A stretch of DNA of 64,000 nt from Oikopleura dioica (lineage: Eukaryota > Animalia > Chordata): contig OU015567.1 of assembly GCA_907165135.1 (NCBI GenBank), positions 13,578,001 to 13,642,000 on the forward strand, read 5' to 3'. Shown here piece after piece: positions 19,026-62,945 of the stretch. Numbering within the stretch: the stretch's first letter is position 1; the number at the start of each line of letters is the position of its first letter. The notes beneath the pieces are model-generated. The model was not told where the DNA came from. It made no database searches and saw only the letters and a program-made list of their open reading frames with translations. Position numbers and translations under genes: made by a program.

Positions 19026-22000
19026 ATGAAGCTTTTTGCATCGCTTTCAAGCTATGGTAAGTTTTCATAAATATAGTTGAAGCTTTAAATTGGTATTTTT
19101 CTCTAGCGATTGCTGCCAGTACCGATTTTTGGGTGAATAGCTACGATCAGGGTTCTAAACGGACATGTCCGTGTACGGATTTTATCCGTGTCTGTCCGGT
19201 CTTGTCCGTACGGACAGACTAGACTTTTAGTCTATTGGTTGAGGAAAAAACGGACAGCCTAGACCGGACTTTTGTCACGATCCGGACAAAATCCGTATTT
19301 GTCCGTATTTGTCCGTGAAATCCGGACAACCCCAGACTTTTGTCCGTGTCTGTAAAATCCGGGCAGAATCCGGAAAAATCCGTAAAAAACACGATTTGAG
19401 TTGGAATTCGTTTCAAAAAAGCCTGAACCAACGTCATTGTTTTATAAAATAAGCCAGGTTTTATATCAAATCAAGGTTTAATCAAGTTTCATATAAAAAT
19501 TTTTGACTTTTTGCCGGAAAATATCGATGATAACTTTTAATTGATATGTCTTTTTGATGGTGCGAAGACGGAACTTTGAGGACCGAGTTTCAAGGAAAAT
19601 TGGTTAAATTAAGAATTAGGTCCTTCATTATTCCGCTAATTCATTGCGAGTTCTAATTTGGGACTTTCAGCTCAGCATTTTCGGAAAAAGCCAGCTCAAC
19701 GTGTTGAGGGGTCAGCGGTCCGGCTAGCCCGCTCAGTCATTCAGCTCGATCATTTTGAGAGAACTCAGCTCAGACTAATGATTTTCTTCATAAAGCGAGC
19801 TAAGGTCAGCTTGGATAATACCAGCTGACATTAACTTCTCAATACACGGGCGCGCGACTAAGCGCTCAAAACACGGGGTCCAATTATTGGACCACAATGC
19901 ATTATCCAGCCCCGCGCGGCGCGCCAAATTCAGAGTGTGAAAAACAGCGCTCAGGACTTTTGGCTCTAATTGACGTTTCCGTCGGGTAAAAAAGCTCGTA
20001 AATGTATTGCTAGAAAGCTTGAACCCTCTTCTATAAAAATAAACAATTGTAAATCGAAAAATCCGTTCCGATTTTTCACCAGAGAGCGAAAGAGAAATCT
20101 GGCGCAAAACGCCACCACTTTTGAGTTTTCATTCGAAACTTCACAGAGTGGTTCGTTTTTGTCCTGTCAGCTCACATTTCAAAATTCAGGTCAAACAGAT
20201 AACTACAACGGGAAAATCAGGGGGTCAAAGTCGCCGTGGTCCAATGATTGGACCACGTGCATTGAGAAGTTAAGATAACGCAAGCTCAGCTAAGTTTCGC
20301 AAATTTTCATACAGCTTTGCTCAGCTTTGAGAAATTTTCTTTAAGGTCAGCTTCAAAAAGGTCCTAGCTAAAAGTCGCTGTATTGTCTGCCGAATTTATT
20401 TCTCAAAGATTTTTTTTGGTGTTGTCGGGTTTATTTCGATAAAAATTTGTTTTTTTACCCATGGAATTTTACGGACATTTACGGACAAGACTTTTTAGAC
20501 CAGACTTTTTCTTTTAAAAAAAATGTTTCCGGATTCTACGGACAAAAACGGACAAAACGGACATGTCCGGGACTAGACCGGACAAAAATCCGTTTTTTCG
20601 ATCCGGACACGGATAGACTAGACTTGGGATTTTGGCGGAGGACACGGACACGGACAGACTAGACTTTTAGATTTTGCCTCAAATTTAGAACCCTGGCTAC
20701 GATAACTCGGCTAGAATTCCATGTGCCGACTTGACCTCCTTGAAGAACGTCCTCCAAATCAGTTGGTTTAGATCTGATCTCACGGGCTCGTCGAAAACAG
20801 AAATCGCTGAACTTGCGAATGAAAATGGAATAATCAAAAACGCCGAAAAAGTACCAGGATACACAGTCGATGATACGGGTGCTTTAGTCATCTCAAAATC
20901 GGGCGACGATGATTTCTCCTTGAACGACATTGCTTTTTACGAATGCCAAGCAGATGTAAAAGATGAGAACGGAAAGATTACTCCTGCTGATATCAAAAGA
21001 AAACTTCTCGTTAATTTTATAATGGACAAAAACGATCTTGAGCCTGTTGTCAGAGGTAGAATCATAAAAATTTAATCATTTATAATCAGCTGATCATATA
21101 AAAGTCTCATAAAAACACCGCTCTAGATAAACGACTCGGCGAAGAAGACAAAAAAGAATACAAAGAAGGCATCAGATATGAAATCGCTGAGTGCGAATCG
21201 AAAGAAGCCGGCCCCGAAGCGCCAGTATTGATCTGGAGAGCGCTCGATTCTAGCGGCGATGAAATTTCCAACAGCAACGAATTCGGCTCTTGCAAGAGCA
21301 AACTTAAAACTCTCGATGACAGCAACTTTTGTGGAAAAACAAATGGTTCGGGCAGTTTTCTTTACGAGATTGTTTTACGATTTAGATTTCATCCACATGG
21401 ATAAACAAGATCAGCGAAAACTTCAAACGACGACGCTTTCTCTCGCATTTGACTCAACTCAAATTGAAGGCATTTCTTCCAGCTTTGACAAGGCGCATTT
21501 TCTGTGCGAAGCGCACTACAAAGAAGCCTGGAACGGCGAACTTGTCGATGTCATTAAAGCAAAACGATGGCCCGCAGATGACAATACCATCCGAGTCATC
21601 AGTATTTGAATGCCTCGTAAGCTCATTTTCATGGAATTTAAGGCCCCGTGCGTAATGTTGATATTCTCGTCAATGGTGCTCCAGTTAGCGCTGGAGTTCT
21701 TGACATGACGAATGGAAACCCATCTTTGGAGTGCAGCTCCGACGGATTTGACAACAAAGGCGCAAACGAAATCAACCCACGAGGAACCAGATCGAGAACA
21801 GGAGACAATATGAAATTCTCGTGTAAAGCAAGAAACTCACTGAACGAAGGCAAATGGGTCGAAAAGGAGTTTACCTTTACTGAAGCAAGTTTGTACATAA
21901 ATTTAAGAGCCCCGAGAATATGTTTTTAGCGCTACAAACACCGACCGCCGAATATTCTCATTTTGGTCTCGTGGCAAAAGTGTCAGCCGAAAGCACACCA

Positions 22001-43351: not shown

Positions 43352-46300
43352 TTAGTAGCCATAGTTCAGATTCGGGTTTCGTCGAAGGGCTCGAGCGCTG
43401 AGTCGAGAATTCTGCTTGCGTACTCGCATCTGGAATTTCATCTCAGATCGGTTCTTCTTTTTGTTGTCTCGGTTCTTCTTTTTCTTGTTCTTGGCAGCCT
43501 TCTTTTTGGCTTTCTTCTCGGCCTTCTTCTTCTTCTTGGCGGCTTTCTTGGCTGCTTTTTGGGCCTTCTTGATTTCTTTTGGTGAAAGGTTGGTGTTCTT
43601 CTGTGGAGAAGATGGAGCTGGAGCTGCTTCTTTTGATGGAGCCCAGGTTTCAAGACCAGTATTTGCGGGCTCTAAGATACTTTGAGACGATGATAACATG
43701 CAATGTACTTACGTGCTGGAGGATCAACCAAAACAGCCATGATATCGGCAGAATTCACGCAGTGAGTCAATTTCTTCACCCACTTTTGAGAACCATTAGC
43801 ATACTCATGACAGACAGAAGTGTCATGTCCAAGAGCTGGGACTTCTCCATCTGGGCAGGTGAGAGTACAGAGCTTTTCTTTGATGACGACACAGTCTGGA
43901 TGAGTTGGAGCGGGTCCATAGTAAGCAGGTTGTCCAGTAGCCCACCCAGAAGAAGAACCAGAAGTTGAATGAGATGGCCTAGAATATATATAATAAATGG
44001 AATTTTTACATGATCCTACATGGATGAAGAACTACTGGAAGATGATTGAGCTGGCTGAGAGCTTGAGCTGGATGAGCCAGAGCTAGAGCTAGAGGATCCA
44101 GATGGTAGACCGAAGGTATGAAGACTTCTTCGCTTTCGACCGTAAGGGATGTTTTCGTAAGAATCGTAGCTTTCTGGGTAAGAGCAATAGTATCCATCCC
44201 AGTATTGCTTATATTTGTATTGGTTGTAGTTGTAGGGCTCGTGACCATATGAGTTCATGCCTCCATTTCCAGCAACAACCTTAAACATCGTAAAACAACA
44301 AAACAATATGAAAACAAACCTCGTATCGGACAGAAACGTCAGTAAGATTGGTACAAGTGTAAGAACCAGCAACTAGCTTTTCAGCATTATCAGTGACATT
44401 CATTGTGCTACCGGCACCAGTGGTCCATGATGGTGCAACAACCATATCCCAAGCGGTTCCCTCAGTTGTTTCAAGATCGATGGCGCAGGTTTCGTCAGGG
44501 TTCTGAAATACAATAAAATGTAACAATAAAATGTGCTTGAAAAAAATGGCAAACCTCAATAGCATGAACATCTGGGCAGCATCGTACAGGAGCAGCATCC
44601 CAGGTGGCGGTTTCAACAAAACAGTGGTAGGCAGTGATTCCAGAGACAGAAATGCAGTTGTCTTTACAAAGTGGAACACAACGCTGGACTTCTTGGATAT
44701 CGTCGTCCCATTCCCATCTAGATTTAATCTAATTATCAGAAAAGAAATGTTTCATACCTATCCATTGGGTCATCATCGACACTTCTTCGGCCAACGTAAT
44801 GGTGCTGAGTCGATGTATAGGTCGTAGAAGATGAAGAGTAAGAGTTGTATTTCTTGTAGACGTTGGAGTAGTACATACTTCCGGCGTTGTAAGTAACATG
44901 AGAGTACAAGTGATGGTAAGGATGTTGGTAGCCAGCAACGTAACCATACGCGTTGGGTTTGTAGTACTGTTGGTAGTTTGGAGAGCTTGCATAGAATTTC
45001 TCTGGCCAGTAGCTGTTCTTTGCTGGCATGTATCCGTAGTTGTGATAGCTGTACTGAGAGTTTCCGTAGGTACCTTGGATGGCGTTCTGGTTGTAAAATT
45101 GTTTTGAGCAGTCCCAATCAGTGCAAACATCTTCAGATGGAACATCACAGACAGGCTTTGCCTCACAAACTGGGAATGGGCTGAGATCCCATGATGTTCC
45201 GATGTAATCAGTGCAAGTTGTTACTGAATCGTAAGAAACCATAAATCCTTGATCACAGATCAATCTGCAAGTCCATTTGGCCTGAGCAGAGAGAATGTGA
45301 TCCTGATTGTATTCATTGTAGTTGGTATCGTAACCATAGCTTCGCTCGGCTTCATCAAAGAGCTCAGTTCGCTGGTCTTGAGAATAAACGACTTCGATGC
45401 CGGTGACAGAAGTTCGAGTACATTCCCATTGTCCATTAATCTCAGTAGTGTTAGTCGTGAGCTGTGGGTGTCCATCGAGGCAATAATCTTTGTCCTCAAT
45501 GCATCGGGTGATGTCAGACAGCCAGTTTCCGTCGTAACATCGGGTTGTTGTCTTGGAGAAGACTTCTGGTCGATGTCCTTGTTCGCATTTGAGAGTAACA
45601 TCGACAATACCTCCATTGATATTTGTATCAAAGCTGCCGCCAGTGCCAGCGTCGAAGAGAGCGCCAACTTGGGCGGCCGAAGTTGGGCATTTCGAAGGTG
45701 CTTCGACGCAGTGAGTAACAGTACCATTAGCACCGAGAGCATTGAGCCATTTGTCATCGGAGTTGCATGTGAGAATTGACATGTCAGTATCGTCAACTAC
45801 GTAGCTGAGGCCACGATGGTTGAGTCCTTCCTGGCACTGAAGGACACACTCAGTCTTCCAAGCTCCTGGGAGTCGAGTGCACAAGTACATGCCGTTCTCG
45901 ACAACTGACGGCTCGAAATCGCAATCTCTTGGGCAAGCCTTCATCTCTCGAGGAACACACACCGGTGGGTTGACGTCTGGTCCCCACGATGGCCAGTTAG
46001 TTGGGTCGCATGTGAGCTCAGTGTCGCACGTAGAAGAGACAAAACCAGGATCACAAGTGAGATGGCAATGTGTTTGTCCGTGAATAGAGGCATCATAGCC
46101 ATATCCATATGGCCCACTCTTTGTATAAGTCTTCTTAGGTGGCGAGTAACTGTATGCTGAGTAGTGCTGGTAGTTGCTGGCATAGGGAGAACCAGAGTAT
46201 GATGGTGCGGGATAGTTTGATGGATATCCGCTGGATGGATAAGATGGCGCAGAGTAAGAGCTTGATGGATACGAGGATGATGGGTAGGAAGGAGAACCGT

Positions 46301-47572
46301 AGTATCCTCGCTCACCCTCTTCGCCTTCTCCTTCACTATGCTCGGTATCTCGACGTCTTCGGCCATATGGGTCGTAGCCTCCATTGTACGAAGAAGGATA
46401 GCCTGGGTTGTAACCTGGCTGATAACCTGGGTTGTAACCACTGTATGATGGTTTTGGTTCGTAAGTATGACCGTGTGGGCCCTCACATTCCCATCGCCCG
46501 TGCCAATTAAACTGGTTTGAAGTTTGAGACTGTGGATTAGCGCATTGATGACCTCTACCAAATGGTTCATCACATCCTTGTGGAGGAGCTGGCGACCATT
46601 CTCCAGTTCGCAAGTCGCAAGTGATAGTTCCGACGCTTCCGTCAGCGAGAATTTCTCTTGGAACACTAGGTGCTGGGCACTGGACTTTGCAAACCTTCAA
46701 GTATCCAGCTTCTGTGCCCCAAATTGAGCGGGCTTCTTCTTCGGATCGAACTGCTTCGCCCTCGCCTCTGTTGTAAGAGCCATGAACAGCAGCATTGTAG
46801 TATTGATGAGAAGATGGGTATGGCTGGTACTCGCACTCGTACCATCCCGGGAACCAATCATACTTTTCGATGTTGCATCCGTCGTTGAAGTCAAATGGTC
46901 CGTGAAGATGAGTGCATTCTGCCATATTGTCCTTGATGGCGAAGGAGTTCTCAAGTTCATAGAGAGACTTTTCTTTATTAATCCAGGCTCCTTGATTACA
47001 GTAGAACCATCTTGGTTTGTGCTGCCACGAAAGATCTCTGTTGCTGTGAGCTTCTTCACCGTTTCCACCGTCCCAGACAAAGTTTCCGGAGTTACCGGAA
47101 TTGTTGTTGCCCGAACTGGAGGACTGGCTTGATGATCCAGAACTGCTGGAGCTACTGGATGGGAAAAACTCATGAAAACTTCTTCTCTTTCTCTTTCCAT
47201 ATTTTTGGCCGTAATGGGGAACGTAGTTATCTGGGTAATTCTTCCAGATTCCGATTTGGCAGCGGACTTCCATCAACACTTCCCATGTGGGCTTATTTGG
47301 CTCCCAGCCGTAATCGGAAGCTTGGTGGCAGAAAATGTTCGAGTGATGAGGAGTCGTGGTCATCGCTTGGAGGTCGAGACATTGCTGCATGCAAGAGTCA
47401 CTTGAAGCGTCTGTAAAGGTCTTGATATAGTCTGGGGCAACGTCATCGTGAGTTGCGCCCATGGGATCTGCATATTGGGCACTGCCCAAACCAGCGAGGA
47501 ATGCTGTCTGAAATTAATGTTACAATCTCTGATATTCTCTCTTTAGAAAATACGAACCTTTAGTCCCCACAT
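43352..47572 (-). CDS. Large secreted sushi/CCP-repeat protein with Tyr/Ser/Pro/Gly-rich segments, multibasic cleavage sites and a Lys/Ala-rich tail
   Basis: Exon 1 MWGLK (47572-47558) is spliced to TAFLAGLGSA; several C..C..G..C....W..C CCP-like modules; KRKRRS, RRRRDT and RKRRS sites; tail KKAQKAAKKAAKKKKKAEKK; stop 43352. Confidence 0.75.
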
Positions 47573-49529: not shown

Positions 49530-49959
49530 AGGCTTTTAATAAAAAGTTAAATCGAGACTCTACTGATCGAGGTCACTTTTATTACGCTCCTAAAATCAAA
49601 GAAATGGGCACGCGTGAGACTCAGCGGGGTGCGCGTCATTAGCTACGGTTTGGGGGGTTTGCGTCACTAGTTACGGTTGCGTCAATAGCTACGGTGCGTC
49701 AATAGCTACGGTCCCTGTGACTCATTTTTAACCGTAACTATTGACGCACCGTAGCTATTGACGCAACCGTAACTAGTGACGCAAAATGGCAAAAGTTCAC
49801 GCAAAATTTCCAGAATTCAAGAAAAGCCGGCATTTTACACTGAGTCGTCTGTCTATGAGACTGTCGAAGTTAAAACCTAATGATCTGTATTCAATTCTGT
49901 TTGTTAATAAAGGGATTTCATAATTTCATAATTCAATTTCAAAATTAAATTTTTCTGCG

Positions 49960-52900
49960 ATGGAATTTATGGAAGAGAATGAGCACATAGAAATAGAAGC
50001 GCCGTTAAAACTTATGCCTTTCTATGATATGGTGGAAAATTTTGAAAATAACAATTTCTCTCATCAATTTTTAACAATTCAAATTATCTAAAACATTATA
50101 AACGCAAATCAGATTCTTCCATCACAAATAAGAATTAGAAATGGGAACTCCTTTAAAGCCTACTATTTGTGGCTTGAGTCTGACGAAGTATGGTTGTAAT
50201 TTTCGCGTTGGTTTGAAATTGGACTCAATTTATTTTTGGATGGCTCCAAGAAATGATTACAAATGGACAAAAGCGTCTGACGGATGGAGTAAGATTTTGT
50301 TATGGTGTCCTGGTGCTATGCATGGTGCTTCTTGTCTCACGACTTATATCTACGCAAGGACAACAAATTTGAAATTGCGATGCTTTTGGCAGTTTGAAAA
50401 TTTCAAAATTGATGGATTTGAAGGAAATTCTTAAATTTTTTATTCTTTGAATATTAATAAGATTGCTGTATTTGGCCTACCGGCAAATCATAACCCTTCT
50501 ATGAGAATTGAGTTCTATTTTTTGGTTTAGTCATAAAGATAAAGAATCCTTGAAGACTATGAAAAATTCAAAATTTCACATTCTCAAAAATGCACGGTCA
50601 AATCTATCTGGAGAGAAATAGTCTCTGACTGGATGAAGAATATGCATTATTTGAACTGCCTCTCGAAAAATCCTCGGAGTCCAAAACAAATGCGGGATTT
50701 CTTCAGTGAGCGACTTGAACTTGATTCAACAGAAAAAGCGTATTTCTCTGGCAACCATGATCGAAATTTGCGAAATTTGGCTAGTAAAAGAGCTAAAAAA
50801 GTAAAATTGCAGCGAGTGGTGGATGTTCAGGATACTGTGCTATCCAAAATTGAAGAAAAATTCTTTTTCCTTGGAATGGTTTTAATAATTAATAGTTATT
50901 AAAATATGATTTTTGTCAAAATGCCGAAAATCTCTGCAACACAATAATTAAAGATCTAAAACCAATGTAGAATGTAAACCTTTTAGGCTTACTAATGACA
51001 CCATTTCACCGCCGCTGGAGGAAAAAATTCCTTATCTTGATAGTCATATTATACTTGCACTTCAAGAAAATCTGGATATTCTTATGGAGTCATTTATCTG
51101 GGCGTATGACGGAAATTTCAAATGTGTGGATGGAAAGATTAAGCAGCTTTGGATTATCTCGAGTAGTGTTGATGGCGAAAATTTTCAACCTCGCGTTTGG
51201 TGTTTTTTGGAGGGACAGTCTACTGAAGATTATCGAGCTGTTTTTGATACAATTTATGAAGTGACACGAAAACGAATACCAAATGTTATGTTTATCACAG
51301 GTGATTTTGAGGATGCGTCGAGGAAAGCAACAAGGGAATTTTTTTCTGAGCGTTTTGCGCGTTATATTGATCTTGGGGCATGTTCGAGTGGGCTCCATTA
51401 TCATTTTTTTTAATGAAAATTAACATGCAGGCAAAATAAGGCAAAATTCTCAATTACTGATTACGGAGAGATCCCCTTAAGATTTTCGAAAAATTTTGGT
51501 CCTATAGTATAGCCCGATATTTTGTCTGGGGGACCAGAAGAACAGGGACGCACGTCCACTCCTTAAAGTTTTAAACATCGATTTTTCTTGGATAACCTCA
51601 AGTTACAAAATTTGATCAGACAAAAAAGATGATCAGCCAGAGCGAGTTTCATTGCCACAAATGGATGTTTATGAAACACCACAACAGAAACTACCTCCCG
51701 AAAATTTTAGAACGGATTTAATGTGACCCTCGAAGAACCTAGGATTTTTCACTTTTAGTGGGATATACGAATTGGCGCACTTGAATTTTTAGTATTTATA
51801 TCCGACTGTTGAGTTCCACCGACTCATAGTATCTAACTAACTGAGTTTATATCCAATTTTTGAAGCGGCGAAAGCAGCTTCTTCAGTCGCACATCGCCCC
51901 ATTGAGAGCATTTTAAATTCATCAGTTGCTCGTGTTCGCTGATAGATAGCTTGCCAAAGCAATCCGTTAAAATCGCCATCGCAACAGGACATTTTAGCAC
52001 GTGAGCGGCTACAGCTGCGTTAGGAAGTAAATTCCGCCGCAGACGGGGATAACAATGAGCAGCAACTTCAGCCTTTGAGTTGACAAGCGCCCAAACTAGA
52101 ATTGTATGGAAAATGTCGTCGTTTTCTATGTTGAGAGGACATCTGTCGAAATTGAATCCTTTTAAAAGCATAAGACACGAGTGTGCCCGAATTTTCGGTG
52201 TTTTGGTACATTTAGGATAATCATTCACGCGATTTCCTTGAACGCCAGCAAAATATTCCAGCAGCCAAAATCTGCAGACCAGGCGGTATATCCTTTTTGA
52301 AATGTTGGCCGACTTTCGAGGGCTAGCCACTTAATGGATCACGCCGTTCCGAGCGCAGATTCTGAAATTGCTGGCAGACGAGACGAACCTAGAATGTTCC
52401 GCTTACGGCGAGGAAAATCTGGCTTTAGCTTTGCTCATGGCTTGAAATTGAAAAAAGCAATTTTTAAACGCTGTTTTTAATGAAGGGTGAAATCAGGTTT
52501 GACATCACTCTCTTCTGCTTCATAAGGTGGGGAAGTAAGGGATGGACTTAACCGAGAGCTACACGAGTGTTCGCTCGGGAGGATGACTATTTACACCACA
52601 GGGAAAATGTTTTCCGCACGTTCGATCGATCACCAATTCGAATTGAGCCCATTTTCATTGAACCAATTTTTCGATTTTTATAAATATTAATAAGTTGTGA
52701 GCGAGTCGTTTTTTTTTGTAAAATACATAAGAATAGTTTAAAGAAAATAATCATGAGCGAGAGTATTACTTTTAAATTTTGTACAGTTAGTTTCGATGTT
52801 CTCGTTTATGTTTTCAGAAAGTAAAGCTACGATACTCCGAGATCCTAAGAAAAAAATTGAATTCCATGTTCTTGAATTAATATTTCATGCCCCAGTTGAT

Positions 52901-55900
52901 AAAAAAAGTAAATGTGATATAATATTTCAGACAGAAAAAGTGATTTAAGTGCGCCATAAAAGTCGACTCAGAACACAGCTCAGAGTTCAGCAAAAGTTTT
53001 TTTTCCGGATTTTCTGATAATAAAAGGAAAATAAATTTTGAATCTTAGGTATTGTTTCTTTAATTTGTTTTGCCTTATTTTGTCGATGCATGTTATTAAA
53101 ATTTGAAACTTTTGATTTAATAGAGCCACATACAGTTCCATTATCAGCAAAGTGCTAAAAGATACGCCGAAACCAAGCTCAGACTAGCTGTTTCTTACCG
53201 TGACAAGAAATCTTGGAAGGTCAAAGCTTTACTTAAGGACCCCTTCGTCAAGAAGTTCTAGGCATATTTAAGTGGTAGAACTAGGTTTTTCGAAAAACGG
53301 GCGCTCAAGGTCAGCCAACCTTAGATTTTCAAAATCTTCTTTCGGGTGTAGATTTCGTAAAGTCTTAAATTCGGAACATGTTGATCTAACTTAAGGGTAT
53401 CCGCCTCAATTCACCAATTCGCAAAAACTCTCCACTTATTTATGTGACTTGTTTTTCTTTTATTAAAAAGTTTTACGAAAACTGTGGCGATGTTAATCAG
53501 GAATCAAATAACAACCTTTACATTTAGCCTTCAGTTGGCAACTCCCGGCTGAGGGATTCGAGTTTCTCTATGTACTCGTAGTTTCTTGATTTTTGTTACT
53601 GCTATTATAATTAACAGTGATCAGATGATCGTTATAACCTTACCCATCATAATAAATTTGATTTACTTTGGCCGGAGAGGTTGAGGATAGTTTCTATCAC
53701 ACCGAATCCTAGTTCAAATTATACAAAGCAGCAAAATTCTAGTTTATGTATCAGAGCCACTGTCTCACGGTACTGAGGGCCAGAAACGAAGGGGTCTTTA
53801 AGCTTCAAACTGTCCTTCATTTTTCTGATTGTCTGATTGCGGAATCTTTTGAGGAATGCCTAAAAGAAGAAATTTCCGAAATAAAAAATGATGTCGATGG
53901 CCCAAAATGGGATGAATGGGCAAATTATATTTTCAAAACTTATACTCGACCTGACGCTCAGTATTCGCCACAAAGTTGGTCGGAAATTTGGGCGACGAGG
54001 GCAATTAGTGGTGATTTTGATTCTACAAACAATCATTTAGGTGAAGGATTTATTAATTATTCAGTGCCCGTGATCGATCTTACAGTATAAATTGACTTTT
54101 GCCTTTTTTGGCAAATGATAAATGCGTTTTTATCGAAAGATTTTCTTTTCTCGCCATTTATCAGACTAGAACAAACTCGTAACAAAAGTAGAAGGCCGTC
54201 ATGCGCTTTTTAAACAATTGAAGCCGCAAAGTGCCTCATCGTATTTTCCATCTCGTTTATAATCGTGCTTTCAGCCGCTTCGATTCCCAGAATCTCAAAC
54301 ACCTTCGGAATGTGATTCGAAGACGTTCTTTTCCAGTCGATTTTCTGACCGGACATAAGCAAAAAGTATCGACAATTTCTTAAATCTTTAAAAGAATCTT
54401 TAAATTCCTTGCTTCGAAAACGCGGACTATCGAAGCAGAAATCGATCAACGACATTTTACAAATAGTACACGATATTCAAACTGAGAAGATAAATTTGCA
54501 GAATTTTATGGCGGAACCCCGATTTGATCATCTAATTTTGGTGGAGAAACGACAGAAAAAAGTCTATTGCCTCAAGAATTTGATTTTTTATGATGCTCTC
54601 ACCAGATTCTATAACAATACTGGACGTCGAGCTATAACTGATTATGTTGAAAAATCGTCATTGAAAGAAGAAATGAAAATTCTTGCTTATCGACTGTACG
54701 GCGCCGGAAATCGAGCGGAAACTTTGCTGACGAATCCTCAGAAGTATGCTGAGTTTGTTCAAGATGCCGAGAAAAATGAAGTTTTTAATTGGCTTCTTGC
54801 AAAAATTGGAGAAAAGTCAAAAAATCAACATCCAAAACAACCACAACAAATAAACCCGCCGAACAATTTCACTCCAAGTCAACCTTCTCTCCCAAAATCA
54901 GTACCAGAAAATCCACCTGTTCAAGGGATAACGACCTATCCAGTTCAATACCAACCTCCAATACCAGTTTATCAGCAAGGAGCTGTTACGCCTGTTGTTG
55001 TGAATCATACAGATTATATTCCGAGAATCCAGTCTTATCTAGAGCCAGGGCCCTCTGGGTCATTTCTGAGATTATTGGAAGACATTGATGAGCCATTCTC
55101 TCCAGATACGCCTACTTTGGCAAGCAGCTGTAATCATTTTGAAATCGGGGGACATTTTGACTCTACAACTTCCGGAGACTCGGGCTTACCATCTGAAAAG
55201 ATTGATAATGCTGGAATGACTCCACAGAACAATTTCGCTCAAAATGGACTTGATAACTCATCAGAAAGTGAAGATGAGTGTATTTACGCTCAACTCCGAA
55301 CTCCATTTGAATTGAAGTCGCCTTCGGAAATTAGTCACGAGCCAGTTATTATCCAGAAAATTGGCAGGAAAGATAAATTTCCGTCATTGATTTCTATGGA
55401 TTATTTTCTCAGCGAACTTGCTCATGGAGTCGAGAGAGTGGTTATTCCGCTTAGTACTACAAAAAAAATGATGATGCGATGTTTGCGACCAGCCAATTTG
55501 ATTTTCACACTTCTTGATCAGAATTGGTTTTTACGTTGTGATACCCTTATTTTTCCCTGCCATAAGGAAAAGGAGAATGAATTCTACGTCATTGAAATCG
55601 ATTTGAAAAATCGGAAATCGAGGTAAAATATGTCTTGTTAAACAAAAATTGACTACGGTTGATAGAATTTATGATTTTCTTGTTGGCTCGAAGAACCTGT
55701 TTGGTTTCAATATTCTTACTGTTGGTCATGAGTTTATGAGTTTTGTGCTTGCTTTGAAAAATTTCTTGAATGGGAAATTTGGCGCTCATTTTCTTCATCA
55801 AGTATCCCAGGAGCAAATTGCGACGGAAGCTCTTTGTCGGATTGATATTATTCAGTGCCCAGTGGAAAAGGTTAACATTAAATTTTACACCATAAATTAT

Positions 55901-56080
55901 AAAAAATTTAGCGGTTCGAAAGAGGTGACTCTCATCTGGTTGTCCTAGGAATTGTTGAGAAATTATGCTCTGGAGAAGATCCAGAAAGTTTGGATATCAA
56001 AAATATTCGAAATTTTTATACTGAGAAGGTAAATTAAGTCATCCAAATTCATATAAAAAAATTCTAGTTTCGTACGGAGA
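49960..56080 (+). CDS. MULE transposase, multi-exon, with a long C-terminal extension; intactness unverified
   Basis: YDGNFK..QLWII..PRVWCFLE..EDYRAVF..ITGDFEDA (51084-51390); HYQQSAKR..KLRL..Y (53139-53212); W..YIFKTY..W..TNNHL|ESLNSLL (phase-1 intron 54041-54394 gives the TNN..E motif); ORF 54409-55626. Outer coordinates approximate. Confidence 0.75.
51833..52330 (-). pseudogene. Captured TRPM channel N-terminal (MHR4-like) fragment inside the MULE
   Basis: IFHTILVWALV..AEVA, AMAILTDCF and LKCSQWGD resemble recalled TRPM motifs PFHEL.VWAVL..MA, A..LL..CY and RRCPLWGD. No TM domain; flanked by stops. Confidence 0.6.
54228..54362 (-). pseudogene. Captured fragment of an RNA polymerase largest subunit (RPC1/POLR3A-like)
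   Basis: KRTSSNHIPKVFEILGIEAAESTIINEMENTM closely resembles the recalled RPC160-type motif RT.TNH..EVF.VLGIEAAR..II.EI..TM. Confidence 0.75.
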
Positions 56081-57505
56081 AAATGAACGCAAGAAAAAGA
56101 AAAATTCATGAAAGTTCTTCTTCTTCAAATTTTTCGTCCTCGATTGAACTCTGATTATGAACTTTTTTACTGAGAATAAATTTTTTTCAACTGAACTTGA
56201 TCTGAACTTTTTTTTGCGTTACTAGTTACGGTTGCGTCAATAGCTACGGTGCGTCAATAGCTACGGTCCCTGTGACTCATTTTTAACCGTAACTATTGAC
56301 GCACCGTAGCTATTGACGCAACCGTAGCTACTGACGCAAACCCCCCAAACCGTAGCTATTGACGCGCACCCGACTCAGCGGGAGCGAAATGTCAGAGGGA
56401 TGAGCCGTTAGATGGGCGAATTTTATGAGCAATAAATCCATCCAAGGTTGCGAGTGAGCGTTATTAGGAGGCTGAAAATCGTCAAATTGATTTTTTAGCG
56501 AGGAGTACTTTTTTTATAGCGTTCTCACGATCTAAAAAATAAAGAAAATCCTCATACTTCGACTTACATTAAGTGATTGACCGGCCTCTATATCATATAG
56601 ACTATATGCTCAAGAATTTTATTAAAGCTTTATTTATTAAAATAGTTTGACGAAGATCGCACTTTCGACAAAAACTCTTTGCTAAGCACTTTTCGCCATT
56701 TTCTGAATTCTTCGACCTTGGTGGGCTGGTTTCATATGCATTTATTGAACAGATAAGATTTCTATGATAAGAGAATTCACGCATTTGAATGAAGCAAGAA
56801 ACAGCTGAGGCAAAAATGAGCTTCTCAACCTCGGCGCTCTTGAGCGCGCTTCTCGAACGCGGAGAAATCTCCTACTTTTAATCGTCTGTGATTTTTTATT
56901 TAATATTTTTTGCGCTTCTCTTAGCGATATTTATAGAGCAAGCTTATCGCCTTCGTGGGGAGGAAAAGACACCTTATGAGTTAAAGAGATATAAATCCAG
57001 CGAAACACGTAGGACAGGAAACAAAACGCGTGAGAAAGAAAAACAGTAAAGAGATATCAGAAAACATTCGAAATGATGACTTTATGAAAACGTCCAGGTT
57101 AGCTGACCTAAATGATCATTCATGATTTTATAATAAAATCGTATTTTTGACACTTAATTGAGCTGAATGGAAACTTTTTGTAAAAAGAGAGGATAATCAA
57201 AGAATAAGCCCAATCTCAAAACATCGAAAATTTTCCGGTCTTTTTCTTTTCTTCGAAACAAAGCGCCTTTTATACAATAAAGCGTCCGGGGTTGAAAAAT
57301 AATCAAAAACGTCGAGAATTGATTTTGTAGCCGCAACTTGAGCCGCTGATTTATGAACAGTTTTAATCAAATTTGCGAAAGCCACGTTTAATACGCAGAA
57401 GCAAATCGCCACCTGGGGATTTACTACAGGGCCAGATTAAACCCTTGTTTAGGCTTCTCGGTGGAGACACAGAACACAAAAAAAAAGAGAAAAAATTGAC
57501 ATTTG

Positions 57506-61497: not shown

Positions 61498-62733
61498 ATG
61501 AAGTTCTCAGTTGCCTTTATCGCGGGCGTTTTTGCCGATACCCAATGTGAAGCAAAGGGAGGAACATGTACGGACTTCCGATATACAACTTGCCATGCAG
61601 GTTATGAGAGATACATTTGCAACGGCGATAGTAATCGCCAGTGCTGTCTATTCTGCTCACCAACTTGCGAGGAGAAAGAACAGCTTGACTCTCAAAATGA
61701 CTCAAAGTAAGTTTATTTGTTGCAATTTGATTTTCAACTTCGATTAGATGCACAAGCGCAGGTGGAGAATGCAAGCATGACACAAACTACTGCAGCGGCC
61801 AGTATCAATCTGGCCTCTGTGGAGGTGGTGCATCTCGAAAATGCTGTACTGCTAAGGCAGATCCGGAGCCGCCCGTAGATGTCGGAGAAGACTATTTTAA
61901 CATTTACTTTGGATACAAACTCGGCGGAAAAATCTCAGGCGAGAATTTCTCTTCATTGGGCGATGCAAAGGCAAGATGCACTGCACTTGGATCGGGCTGC
62001 TCTGGTGTTGTGAACGATTACGCGGGACATTATTATTTGTCAACGAGTTACTCCTTTAGCTCTGCTAGTGGCCACTACACGTACGAAAAGGGCGAGAAAT
62101 GGTCAGCCAGATTTGTCCCAAGAGTCGAGTGGGAAGCGAGAAGCCCAGTCGGCGTTTCGAACTTTAACCTCCCTGCAAGCCATGGTCTGATCGGCCATCA
62201 TACTGCTGGATCTCACTGTACTGACAAAGAATCATGTATTCGGGTTATGAAGGGCATTCAAAACTATCATATGGATTCTCGAGGTTGGTCTGATATTGGA
62301 TACAACTTTTTGGTCGGAGAAGACGGCCGAATTTACGAGGTTAGAGTTAAACACCACCCACCCATCCTCAATTATCGCTCGCTCATCCCTTGCTTAGATA
62401 AACAATTTGATAGGGACGCGGTCAATGGCGTCAAGGAGCGCACTGTAGCAACTGGAACTCGAACACTCTTGGATTCTCTATTATGGGAGACTACAGTAAC
62501 CGTCTCCCAAATCAAAATGCTCTTGATGCTGTTGATGAGCTTATTGCTTGGTTAGAGCGAAGAAACTACCTAAACAGAAGCTGTTACGAATTTGCAGGCC
62601 ATCGAGACCATGGAAATACCCTTTGTCCAGGAGATCCTCTCTATGGTAATTTACCACATTTTACAACACTGACGTATCATTTCAAGCTCTCTGGGGATCC
62701 GGAAAATATCCACACTGGCACGAAAGCTGCTAA
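61498..62733 (+). CDS. PGRP: Secreted peptidoglycan recognition protein (amidase type) with two N-terminal six-Cys repeats
   Basis: HHTAG..C...C...IQNYHM...GWSDIGYNFLVGEDGRIYE|GRG..GAH, GHRD..TLCPG; the Zn-ligand His/His/Cys and catalytic Tyr appear present; N-terminal CEAKGGTC..C..C..CC and CTSAGGEC..C..C..CC. Confidence 0.92.
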
Positions 62734-62945
62734 AGCATTCATTAGCAAAAACTGGAAAAATAAAACGCTATAATTATTTTTGAAGGAAGATTCTGTTCAA
62801 GCCAATATGATATCTGTAACAATTTATTTATTGGTGGCAATAGAAAGGCGAATACTGCATATTTTAATTAGCTCAGCTTACGAATTGGAGAAGTTGACAA
62901 TGTACAGTTGAAGATTTAAAAAATACTGATGAAAAGGGTCTTTCT

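Follow-up and report, generated by a model that had tools for sequence, protein, structure and literature searches.

Capture of cellular genes by Mutator-like elements (MULEs) is established in plants and merely suspected in animals (PMC13359780), and in chordates MULEs themselves are barely documented, with one Ciona sequence only in a broad survey (PMC6446971). The Pack-MULEs of rice, maize and Arabidopsis carry fragments of unrelated cellular genes between MULE terminal inverted repeats (TIRs) bordered by a 9-bp target-site duplication (TSD), and the fragments are exon-sized with bits of flanking intron, i.e. they were captured as genomic DNA. Other plant MULEs, e.g. those bearing a ULP1 protease, keep the transposase together with an acquired cellular gene. 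In Pack-MULEs the transposase gene is lost (PMC6446971). Of the animal elements, Muta1 of Aedes aegypti is an active MULE of 3.2 kb with 12-nucleotide (nt) repeats, no reported cargo and a 504-amino-acid (aa) Asp-Asp-Glu (DDE) transposase, in which a (C/D)(2)H motif is present and a Trp precedes the Glu (PMC5499845). The MULE lineage reported for tunicates is the Phantom group, which has duplications of 8-10 bp and TIRs between 18 and 613 bp long (PMC6446971). The element described here lies in a 64,000-nt stretch of the Oikopleura dioica genome (GenBank assembly GCA_907165135.1, contig OU015567.1, positions 13,578,001 to 13,642,000 of the forward strand; hereafter the window, in which all positions are counted), with borders at 49627 and 56371 and a length of 6.7 kb. 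By its ends and its duplication it is a MULE, and we consider it fairly probable that it is a recently inserted cut-and-paste transposon of the Mutator superfamily which carries a piece of an RNA polymerase (RNAP) largest-subunit gene in one of its introns, in a copy that is probably defective.

With the plant Pack-MULEs the element shares the MULE ends, the 9-bp TSD and an unrelated cellular-gene fragment between the TIRs, exon-sized and with bits of flanking intron. Unlike them, it keeps all recognisable transposase exons, each in an open reading frame, and it has one confirmed fragment, which is situated inside a transposase intron, in an animal host. With the ULP1-bearing MULEs it has in common a transposase and an acquired, putatively host-derived sequence in one element; there, in plant hosts, the acquired sequence is a separate gene and not an antisense exon within a transposase intron. 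Muta1 has a similar end structure, in which a GGGT-initial terminal motif is followed by short subterminal repeats that form a foldback-like TIR, whereas the Oikopleura element is larger, contains foreign DNA between its ends and has repeats of 17 nt and a longer gene with several exons. It is compared with the Phantom group as the lineage that includes a tunicate sequence, and the Pfam FLYWCH and SWIM fingers were undetected in the Oikopleura element.

The two ends of the element and their duplicated target are as follows.

49618..49626, no strand: left TSD GACTCAGCG, read directly and identical to 56372-56380
49627..49786, plus strand: left TIR of ~160 nt, with a terminal 24 nt starting GGGTGCGCG, a G run and a 128-nt palindromic unit at 49658-49785
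56212..56371, minus strand: right TIR, containing the 128-nt palindromic unit at 56213-56340
56372..56380, no strand: right TSD GACTCAGCG, read directly

A preliminary description of this DNA, made from its letters alone, had given the same borders with long TIRs and a perfect 9-bp TSD, and these proved exact when read from the sequence. The TSD is perfect at both borders and has the length typical of MULEs, in which the range is 8-10 bp (PMC5499845). The end of the element is the reverse complement of its start, GGGTGCGCG, and alignment of the left end to the reverse complement of the right end gave an inverted repeat of ~160 nt with six mismatches outside an 18-nt central segment, the TIRs thus being ~96% alike outside this loop. 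Each end consists of three parts, i.e. the terminal 24 nt, the G run and a near-perfect palindrome of 128 nt, the arms of which are 55 nt long. The palindromes are made of the 17-nt subrepeat GCGTCAATAGCTACGGT, all 14 copies of which (with at most three mismatches) are located in the two ends; a fifteenth match in the window, with three mismatches, is at 19131. The number of matches expected by chance is 0.02. Long TIRs, often with subterminal repeats, are a feature of MULEs, and the ends, the TSD and the tunicate host together bear out the earlier suggestion of a MULE-type element in an animal. By analogy to other MULEs, the transposase would bind the arrays of the 17-nt subrepeat in the TIRs, and the insertion would have duplicated 9 bp of the target. 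The left end, taken as single-stranded DNA, forms a hairpin with a folding energy of -68.8 kcal/mol (z = -15).

The two 128-nt units (49658-49785 and 56213-56340) are also 98% identical as direct repeats. Their 18-nt loops have the same orientation and only the arms are truly inverted, and both units form very stable hairpins (-68.8 kcal/mol).

Between the ends, five open stretches of 100, 119, 153, 115 and 425 codons follow each other on the plus strand in differing frames, and are read as the exons of a tentative transposase model of ~845 codons.

50141..50391, plus strand: tentative exon A, from the first ATG of the 100-codon open stretch 50132-50431
50545..50894, plus strand: tentative exon B, in the 119-codon open stretch, without family match
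50971..51386, plus strand: exon C, the catalytic core, with the Pfam MULE match and both Asp residues
53755..54040, plus strand: exon D, starting S-H-C-L, with the His codon at 53758-53760 and Trp residues upstream of the catalytic Glu
54041..54394, plus strand: canonical intron TAG/GTGAAG...TTTAAAAG/AA, 354 nt, GT-AG, phase 1
54395..55626, plus strand: exon E, ~410 codons and stop, completing the Glu codon and encoding the C-terminal portion of the transposase

In-frame GT-AG introns link exon A to exon B (50392..50544) and exon B to exon C (50895..50970, 76 nt). Exon C gave a weak match (E 0.009, 16.9 bits) to positions 1-86 of the 99 in the Pfam MULE profile PF10551. Its first Asp (51108-51110) and second Asp (51303-51305) are 65 residues apart, and a Cys codon at 51381-51383 follows 26 residues past the second. 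MULE and hAT transposases have in common a (C/D)(2)H motif at a distance of 15-45 residues from the second Asp, on its C-terminal side, and a Trp that precedes the Glu (PMC5499845); the Cys of exon C together with the Trp of exon D fits this signature. The order of D, D, C, W and E is that expected for a MULE, with the qualification that C-x-x-H is formed only if 51387-53754 is removed.

The catalytic Glu itself is formed by splicing. Exon D ends in S-T-N-N-H-L and the first base of the Glu codon, and removal of the 354-nt intron completes the split codon to give N-N-H-L-E-S-L-N-S-L-L-R-K-R. The usual setting of the catalytic Glu in MULE and IS256 transposases is N-x-x-E-S-x-N-x-x-L-K. When position 54041 is read through unspliced, the Glu found there has the wrong spacing on both sides and a stop follows 14 codons on. 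The transposase exons noticed in the preliminary description are thus present, open and equipped with MULE hallmarks, the weak Pfam match (E 0.009) included, and the predicted multi-exon gene on the plus strand would supply the transposase of the element. The open stretches of 100-425 codons and the TIRs ~96% alike point to a young, recently inserted copy.

Exon A holds a Cys/Trp-rich segment, recognised by eye, which may be a DNA-binding domain; a zinc-finger domain of the FLYWCH, SWIM or WRKY-like type had no Pfam match in any exon at E≤1, and zinc fingers are common but not universal in MULEs (PMC6446971). Exon E, which includes a Pro/Gln-rich stretch and belongs to the open stretch of 425 codons, had no Pfam, PDB or NCBIfam family, and the exons were without match to the IS256-type NCBIfam models. 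A C-terminal ULP1-like protease, which some plant MULEs have, was considered for exon E and dropped, with no support from Pfam or PDB. Downstream of the transposase stop, two overlapping open stretches (55592-55996, minus strand, 135 codons; 55607-55945, plus strand, 113 codons) had no significant family match, and their lengths are within chance for the composition.

The cargo of the element is a short unit on the opposite strand.

54216..54344, minus strand: RPC1-like exon-like unit of 43 codons, matched by Pfam RNA_pol_Rpb1_5, TIGR02389 and PDB sequences

This unit lies wholly within the intron 54041-54394 and is antisense to the transposase, as the preliminary description had placed an RPC1-like piece between transposase exons. 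The minus-strand open stretch 54213-54476 was searched against Pfam, NCBIfam and PDB, and it matched RNA_pol_Rpb1_5 (PF04998) with E 6.7e-7 and 29.5 bits, above the gathering score of 28.5, and NCBIfam TIGR02389 (rpoA2) with E 1.9e-7. The PDB matches all fell on one conserved segment, and were by score archaeal A'' (23.6 bits), yeast RPC1 residues 1310-1349 (23.0), human RPC1 residues 1235-1281 (21.6), the best RPB1 (19.8) and RPA190 (17.2), with human RPB1 at 14.3 bits. The next 50 minus-strand codons (54060-54209) gave no RNAP match. On its own strand the unit has a pyrimidine tract and CAG directly upstream and GT directly downstream, and it resembles a single exon that has kept stubs of its introns. 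Because these flanks resemble splice signals, it was most probably genomic DNA that was taken up, and the piece would now travel passively, without an antisense role. Its decay goes well beyond what is usual for this conserved segment, whereas the transposase exons and the TIRs are well preserved, which suggests, from the single copy, an old acquisition that has been carried along by the family.

The same scores bear on a reading in which the internal pieces are not host DNA, the RNAP-like stretch having been horizontally transferred with the element from a different organism or a virus and a 165-codon frame, described below, being chance or an element gene. It is favoured by archaeal A'' scoring as high as RPC1 and by a transposase without detectable relatives in the length bands searched. 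RPC1 is, however, the eukaryotic subunit closest to the archaeal one, and the pattern of scores is as expected from an RPC1 exon; the intron-like flanks on the own strand of the unit, which are in host style, also speak against a foreign source. Even with the signs of horizontal spread reported for MULE groups including those of tunicates (PMC6446971) counted in its favour, we hold such an origin to be very unlikely.

Exons C and D are separated by a much longer block.

51387..53754, no strand: block of 2368 nt splitting the C-S-S/H motif, with GAG on both borders

Exon C ends in G-A-C-S-S (TGT TCG AG) and exon D starts with S-H-C-L (AGC CAC), so that removal of the block gives C-S-S-H, the expected motif. 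Depending on how the GAG is assigned, the borders of the block read AG..AG, GT..GA or TG..AG, and never GT..AG. Enumeration of the possible junctions found no in-frame GT-AG pair that removes 51387-53754 and keeps the His, and the sole in-frame GT-AG pair at this junction skips the His entirely. With the canonical pair GT 51388 .. AG 53754 the frame is missed by exactly 1 nt and a stop is reached. A GA-AG pair at 51386..53756 keeps the frame, giving C-S-H rather than C-x-x-H. GA-AG introns are many in O. dioica, where by the reported consensus AG precedes the GA and A follows it (PMC7072748), and the context of the candidate, TTC/GAGTGG, does not fit this AG/GAA consensus.

This leaves two origins for the block, an old intron put out of order by a 1-nt change (of this copy or of the assembly) and an insertion at the GAG microhomology, and under either of them the copy as sequenced probably cannot make a full transposase. 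That the transposase can be spliced into an intact DDE frame, as the preliminary description required, holds for the Glu junction with its canonical intron and fails at the C-D junction. Since the latter is without a usable in-frame splice pair, the autonomy suggested for the element is questionable in this copy, and we regard it as doubtful that a functional transposase is encoded. As a nested element the 2.37-kb block was rejected, having no terminal repeats of its own.

The GAG on both borders and the precise interruption of a conserved motif without splice sites would suit another explanation, namely that both internal pieces entered this copy alone, later and independently of each other, e.g. 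as filler DNA from double-strand-break repair, and are not cargo with which the family moves. The G+C island of the block, which is unlike its surroundings, agrees with this, and no second copy showing shared cargo is at hand. The RNAP piece fits it poorly: its decay greatly exceeds that of the transposase exons and TIRs in this young copy, as would be expected of an old acquisition, and it lies inside a well-formed intron with no exon broken. We therefore judge independent late insertion of both pieces to be unlikely.

Segments 53112-53129 and 53743-53760 form an 18-nt direct repeat (78% identical), both copies ending AGAGCCAC; one is situated 631 nt upstream of exon D and the other at the exon D start. 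The upstream copy opens a 45-codon frame that also starts S-H. The repeat could have arisen by chance or by partial duplication of the beginning of exon D.

The G+C island of the block contains the frame for which an identity with TRPM channels had been proposed.

51836..52330, minus strand: antisense open frame of 165 codons, the "TRPM-like" piece, in a G+C-rich island at ~51800-52650

The G+C content of the island is 43-47%, in comparison to 30-38% around it. Neither Pfam nor NCBIfam assigned the frame to a family, PDB yielded nothing up to E≤10, and no match was obtained at E≤0.001 among 1.84e9 representative proteins (HMMER, full read); the other frames of the island were also blank, and a single-sequence AlphaFold (AF2) model was useless (predicted local distance difference test, pLDDT, 38). 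A TRPM capture that retained ~45% identity over 100+ residues to known TRPMs should have scored clearly. The frame faintly recalls an N-terminal helical region of TRPM, a likeness to which no weight is attached. The TRPM identity of 51836-52330, the sole candidate for such a fragment, was accordingly given up as unsupported in every library searched (Pfam, NCBIfam, PDB and the 1.84e9 proteins). By position both pieces do lie between transposase exons, as had been claimed, while a clean in-frame GT-AG intron surrounds the RPC1-like piece only. An open frame of this length arose in 1.1-1.6% of Markov simulations of the block (P about 0.011-0.016) and is only mildly unusual, which suits the non-host reading given above. 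Also in the island, a 45-nt segment GTAAGC...TTTCAG (52362-52406, minus strand) has the size and style of a host intron and may well be chance by rough estimate.

The preliminary description had combined its observations into a model of an autonomous MULE that carries TRPM and RPC1 fragments in spliceable introns, remains mobile with this cargo, and would supply antisense RNA against essential host genes from its pre-mRNA. This accords with the antisense RPC1-like piece in its clean GT-AG intron, with the openness of every transposase stretch, and with the GA-AG pair that removes the 2.37-kb block in frame in a genome where GA-AG introns are plentiful. The TRPM identity failed every test, however, the GA-AG candidate has the wrong context and gives C-x-H instead of C-x-x-H, and the strong divergence of the RNAP piece from conserved RPC1 sequences makes the extended perfect pairing required for RNA silencing improbable. 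An antisense-RNA effect of the cargo is purely conjectural, and the model as a whole appears highly improbable; what stands of it is the element with RPC1-like cargo in an intron, without the TRPM fragment and with doubtful autonomy. A chordate MULE family that uses its transposase introns as cargo bays, with at least one POLR3A exon antisense in spliceable introns, and that is autonomous and a Pack-MULE at once, is in our estimate quite unlikely.

The reading of a recently inserted, probably defective Mutator-superfamily element with an intron-borne RNAP piece comprises the following steps. A multi-exon gene on the plus strand would provide the transposase; the 354-nt intron that splits the catalytic Glu codon carries the antisense, exon-sized piece of an RNAP largest subunit; and the second block of 2.37 kb, with its G+C island and a 165-codon frame of no detectable ancestry, splits the C-x-x-H motif. 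Several points weigh against it. The exon model was drawn by eye and by motif, and its 5′ part is tentative; the exons were searched one by one. The PF10551 score of exon C (16.9) is lower than the gathering score of 27.6. Among eukaryotic sequences the cargo scores best against RPC1, its candidate source, with a small lead of 2-9 bits over RPB1, and the identity to human RPC1 is only ~47% over 47 residues. A GA-AG intron at 51386..53756, which would keep the frame, may be spliced in this GA-AG-rich genome, contrary to a defective copy. Protein word searches with exon E (proteins of 234-744 aa) and exon C (84-268 aa) found no transposase relative, these searches covering proteins of 0.55-1.75 times the query length, a range outside which full-length transposases of ~800-900 aa fall. 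With a single copy at hand, a passenger of the family and a later insertion in this copy are indistinguishable. No second copy was found within the 64-kb window, in metagenome contigs (scanned with a TIR 28-mer and with exon C) or in viral contigs.

The window represents a compact animal genome encoding a PGRP, an integrin alpha, a CLC channel, a TTL-family ligase and MFS transporters. The element is inserted between an MFS-transporter gene, whose stop is ~125 nt before the element, and a downstream integrin-alpha gene, all on the plus strand; two introns of the neighbouring MFS gene are 47-48 nt long and GT-AG. A PGRP exon shares 83% identity with an O. dioica protein (Okinawa assembly), and everything else is far less similar, so that the window comes from another Oikopleura lineage than the Okinawa one. 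The window shows no synteny with the Okinawa PGRP locus, which hence offers no empty site for comparison.

The PGRP gene (61731-62770), 83% identical to its Okinawa counterpart, has wholly different neighbours there (IMD-domain and LepA-like genes). Gene order is reported to be scrambled between Oikopleura lineages, and the non-syntenic surroundings are consistent with this. On the minus strand, 44739-47513 is an open stretch of 925 codons, rich in Ser, Gly, Pro and Tyr and with a Sushi-repeat match (E 1.9e-6), i.e. a large low-complexity host gene. Searches of the whole window for tRNAs and for Rfam families gave no match.

The Oikopleura genome is very compact and transposon-poor. With one copy and one 129-nt fragment to rest on, the case is a lead and not a discovery. 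Intact MULE ends together with a polymerase exon-like cargo make this Oikopleura element a concrete test case for Pack-MULE-type capture in animals, and show a possible route by which cargo can be held in an intron without destroying the transposase. If the introns of such a family did serve as cargo bays, every transposase pre-mRNA would contain antisense host sequence.

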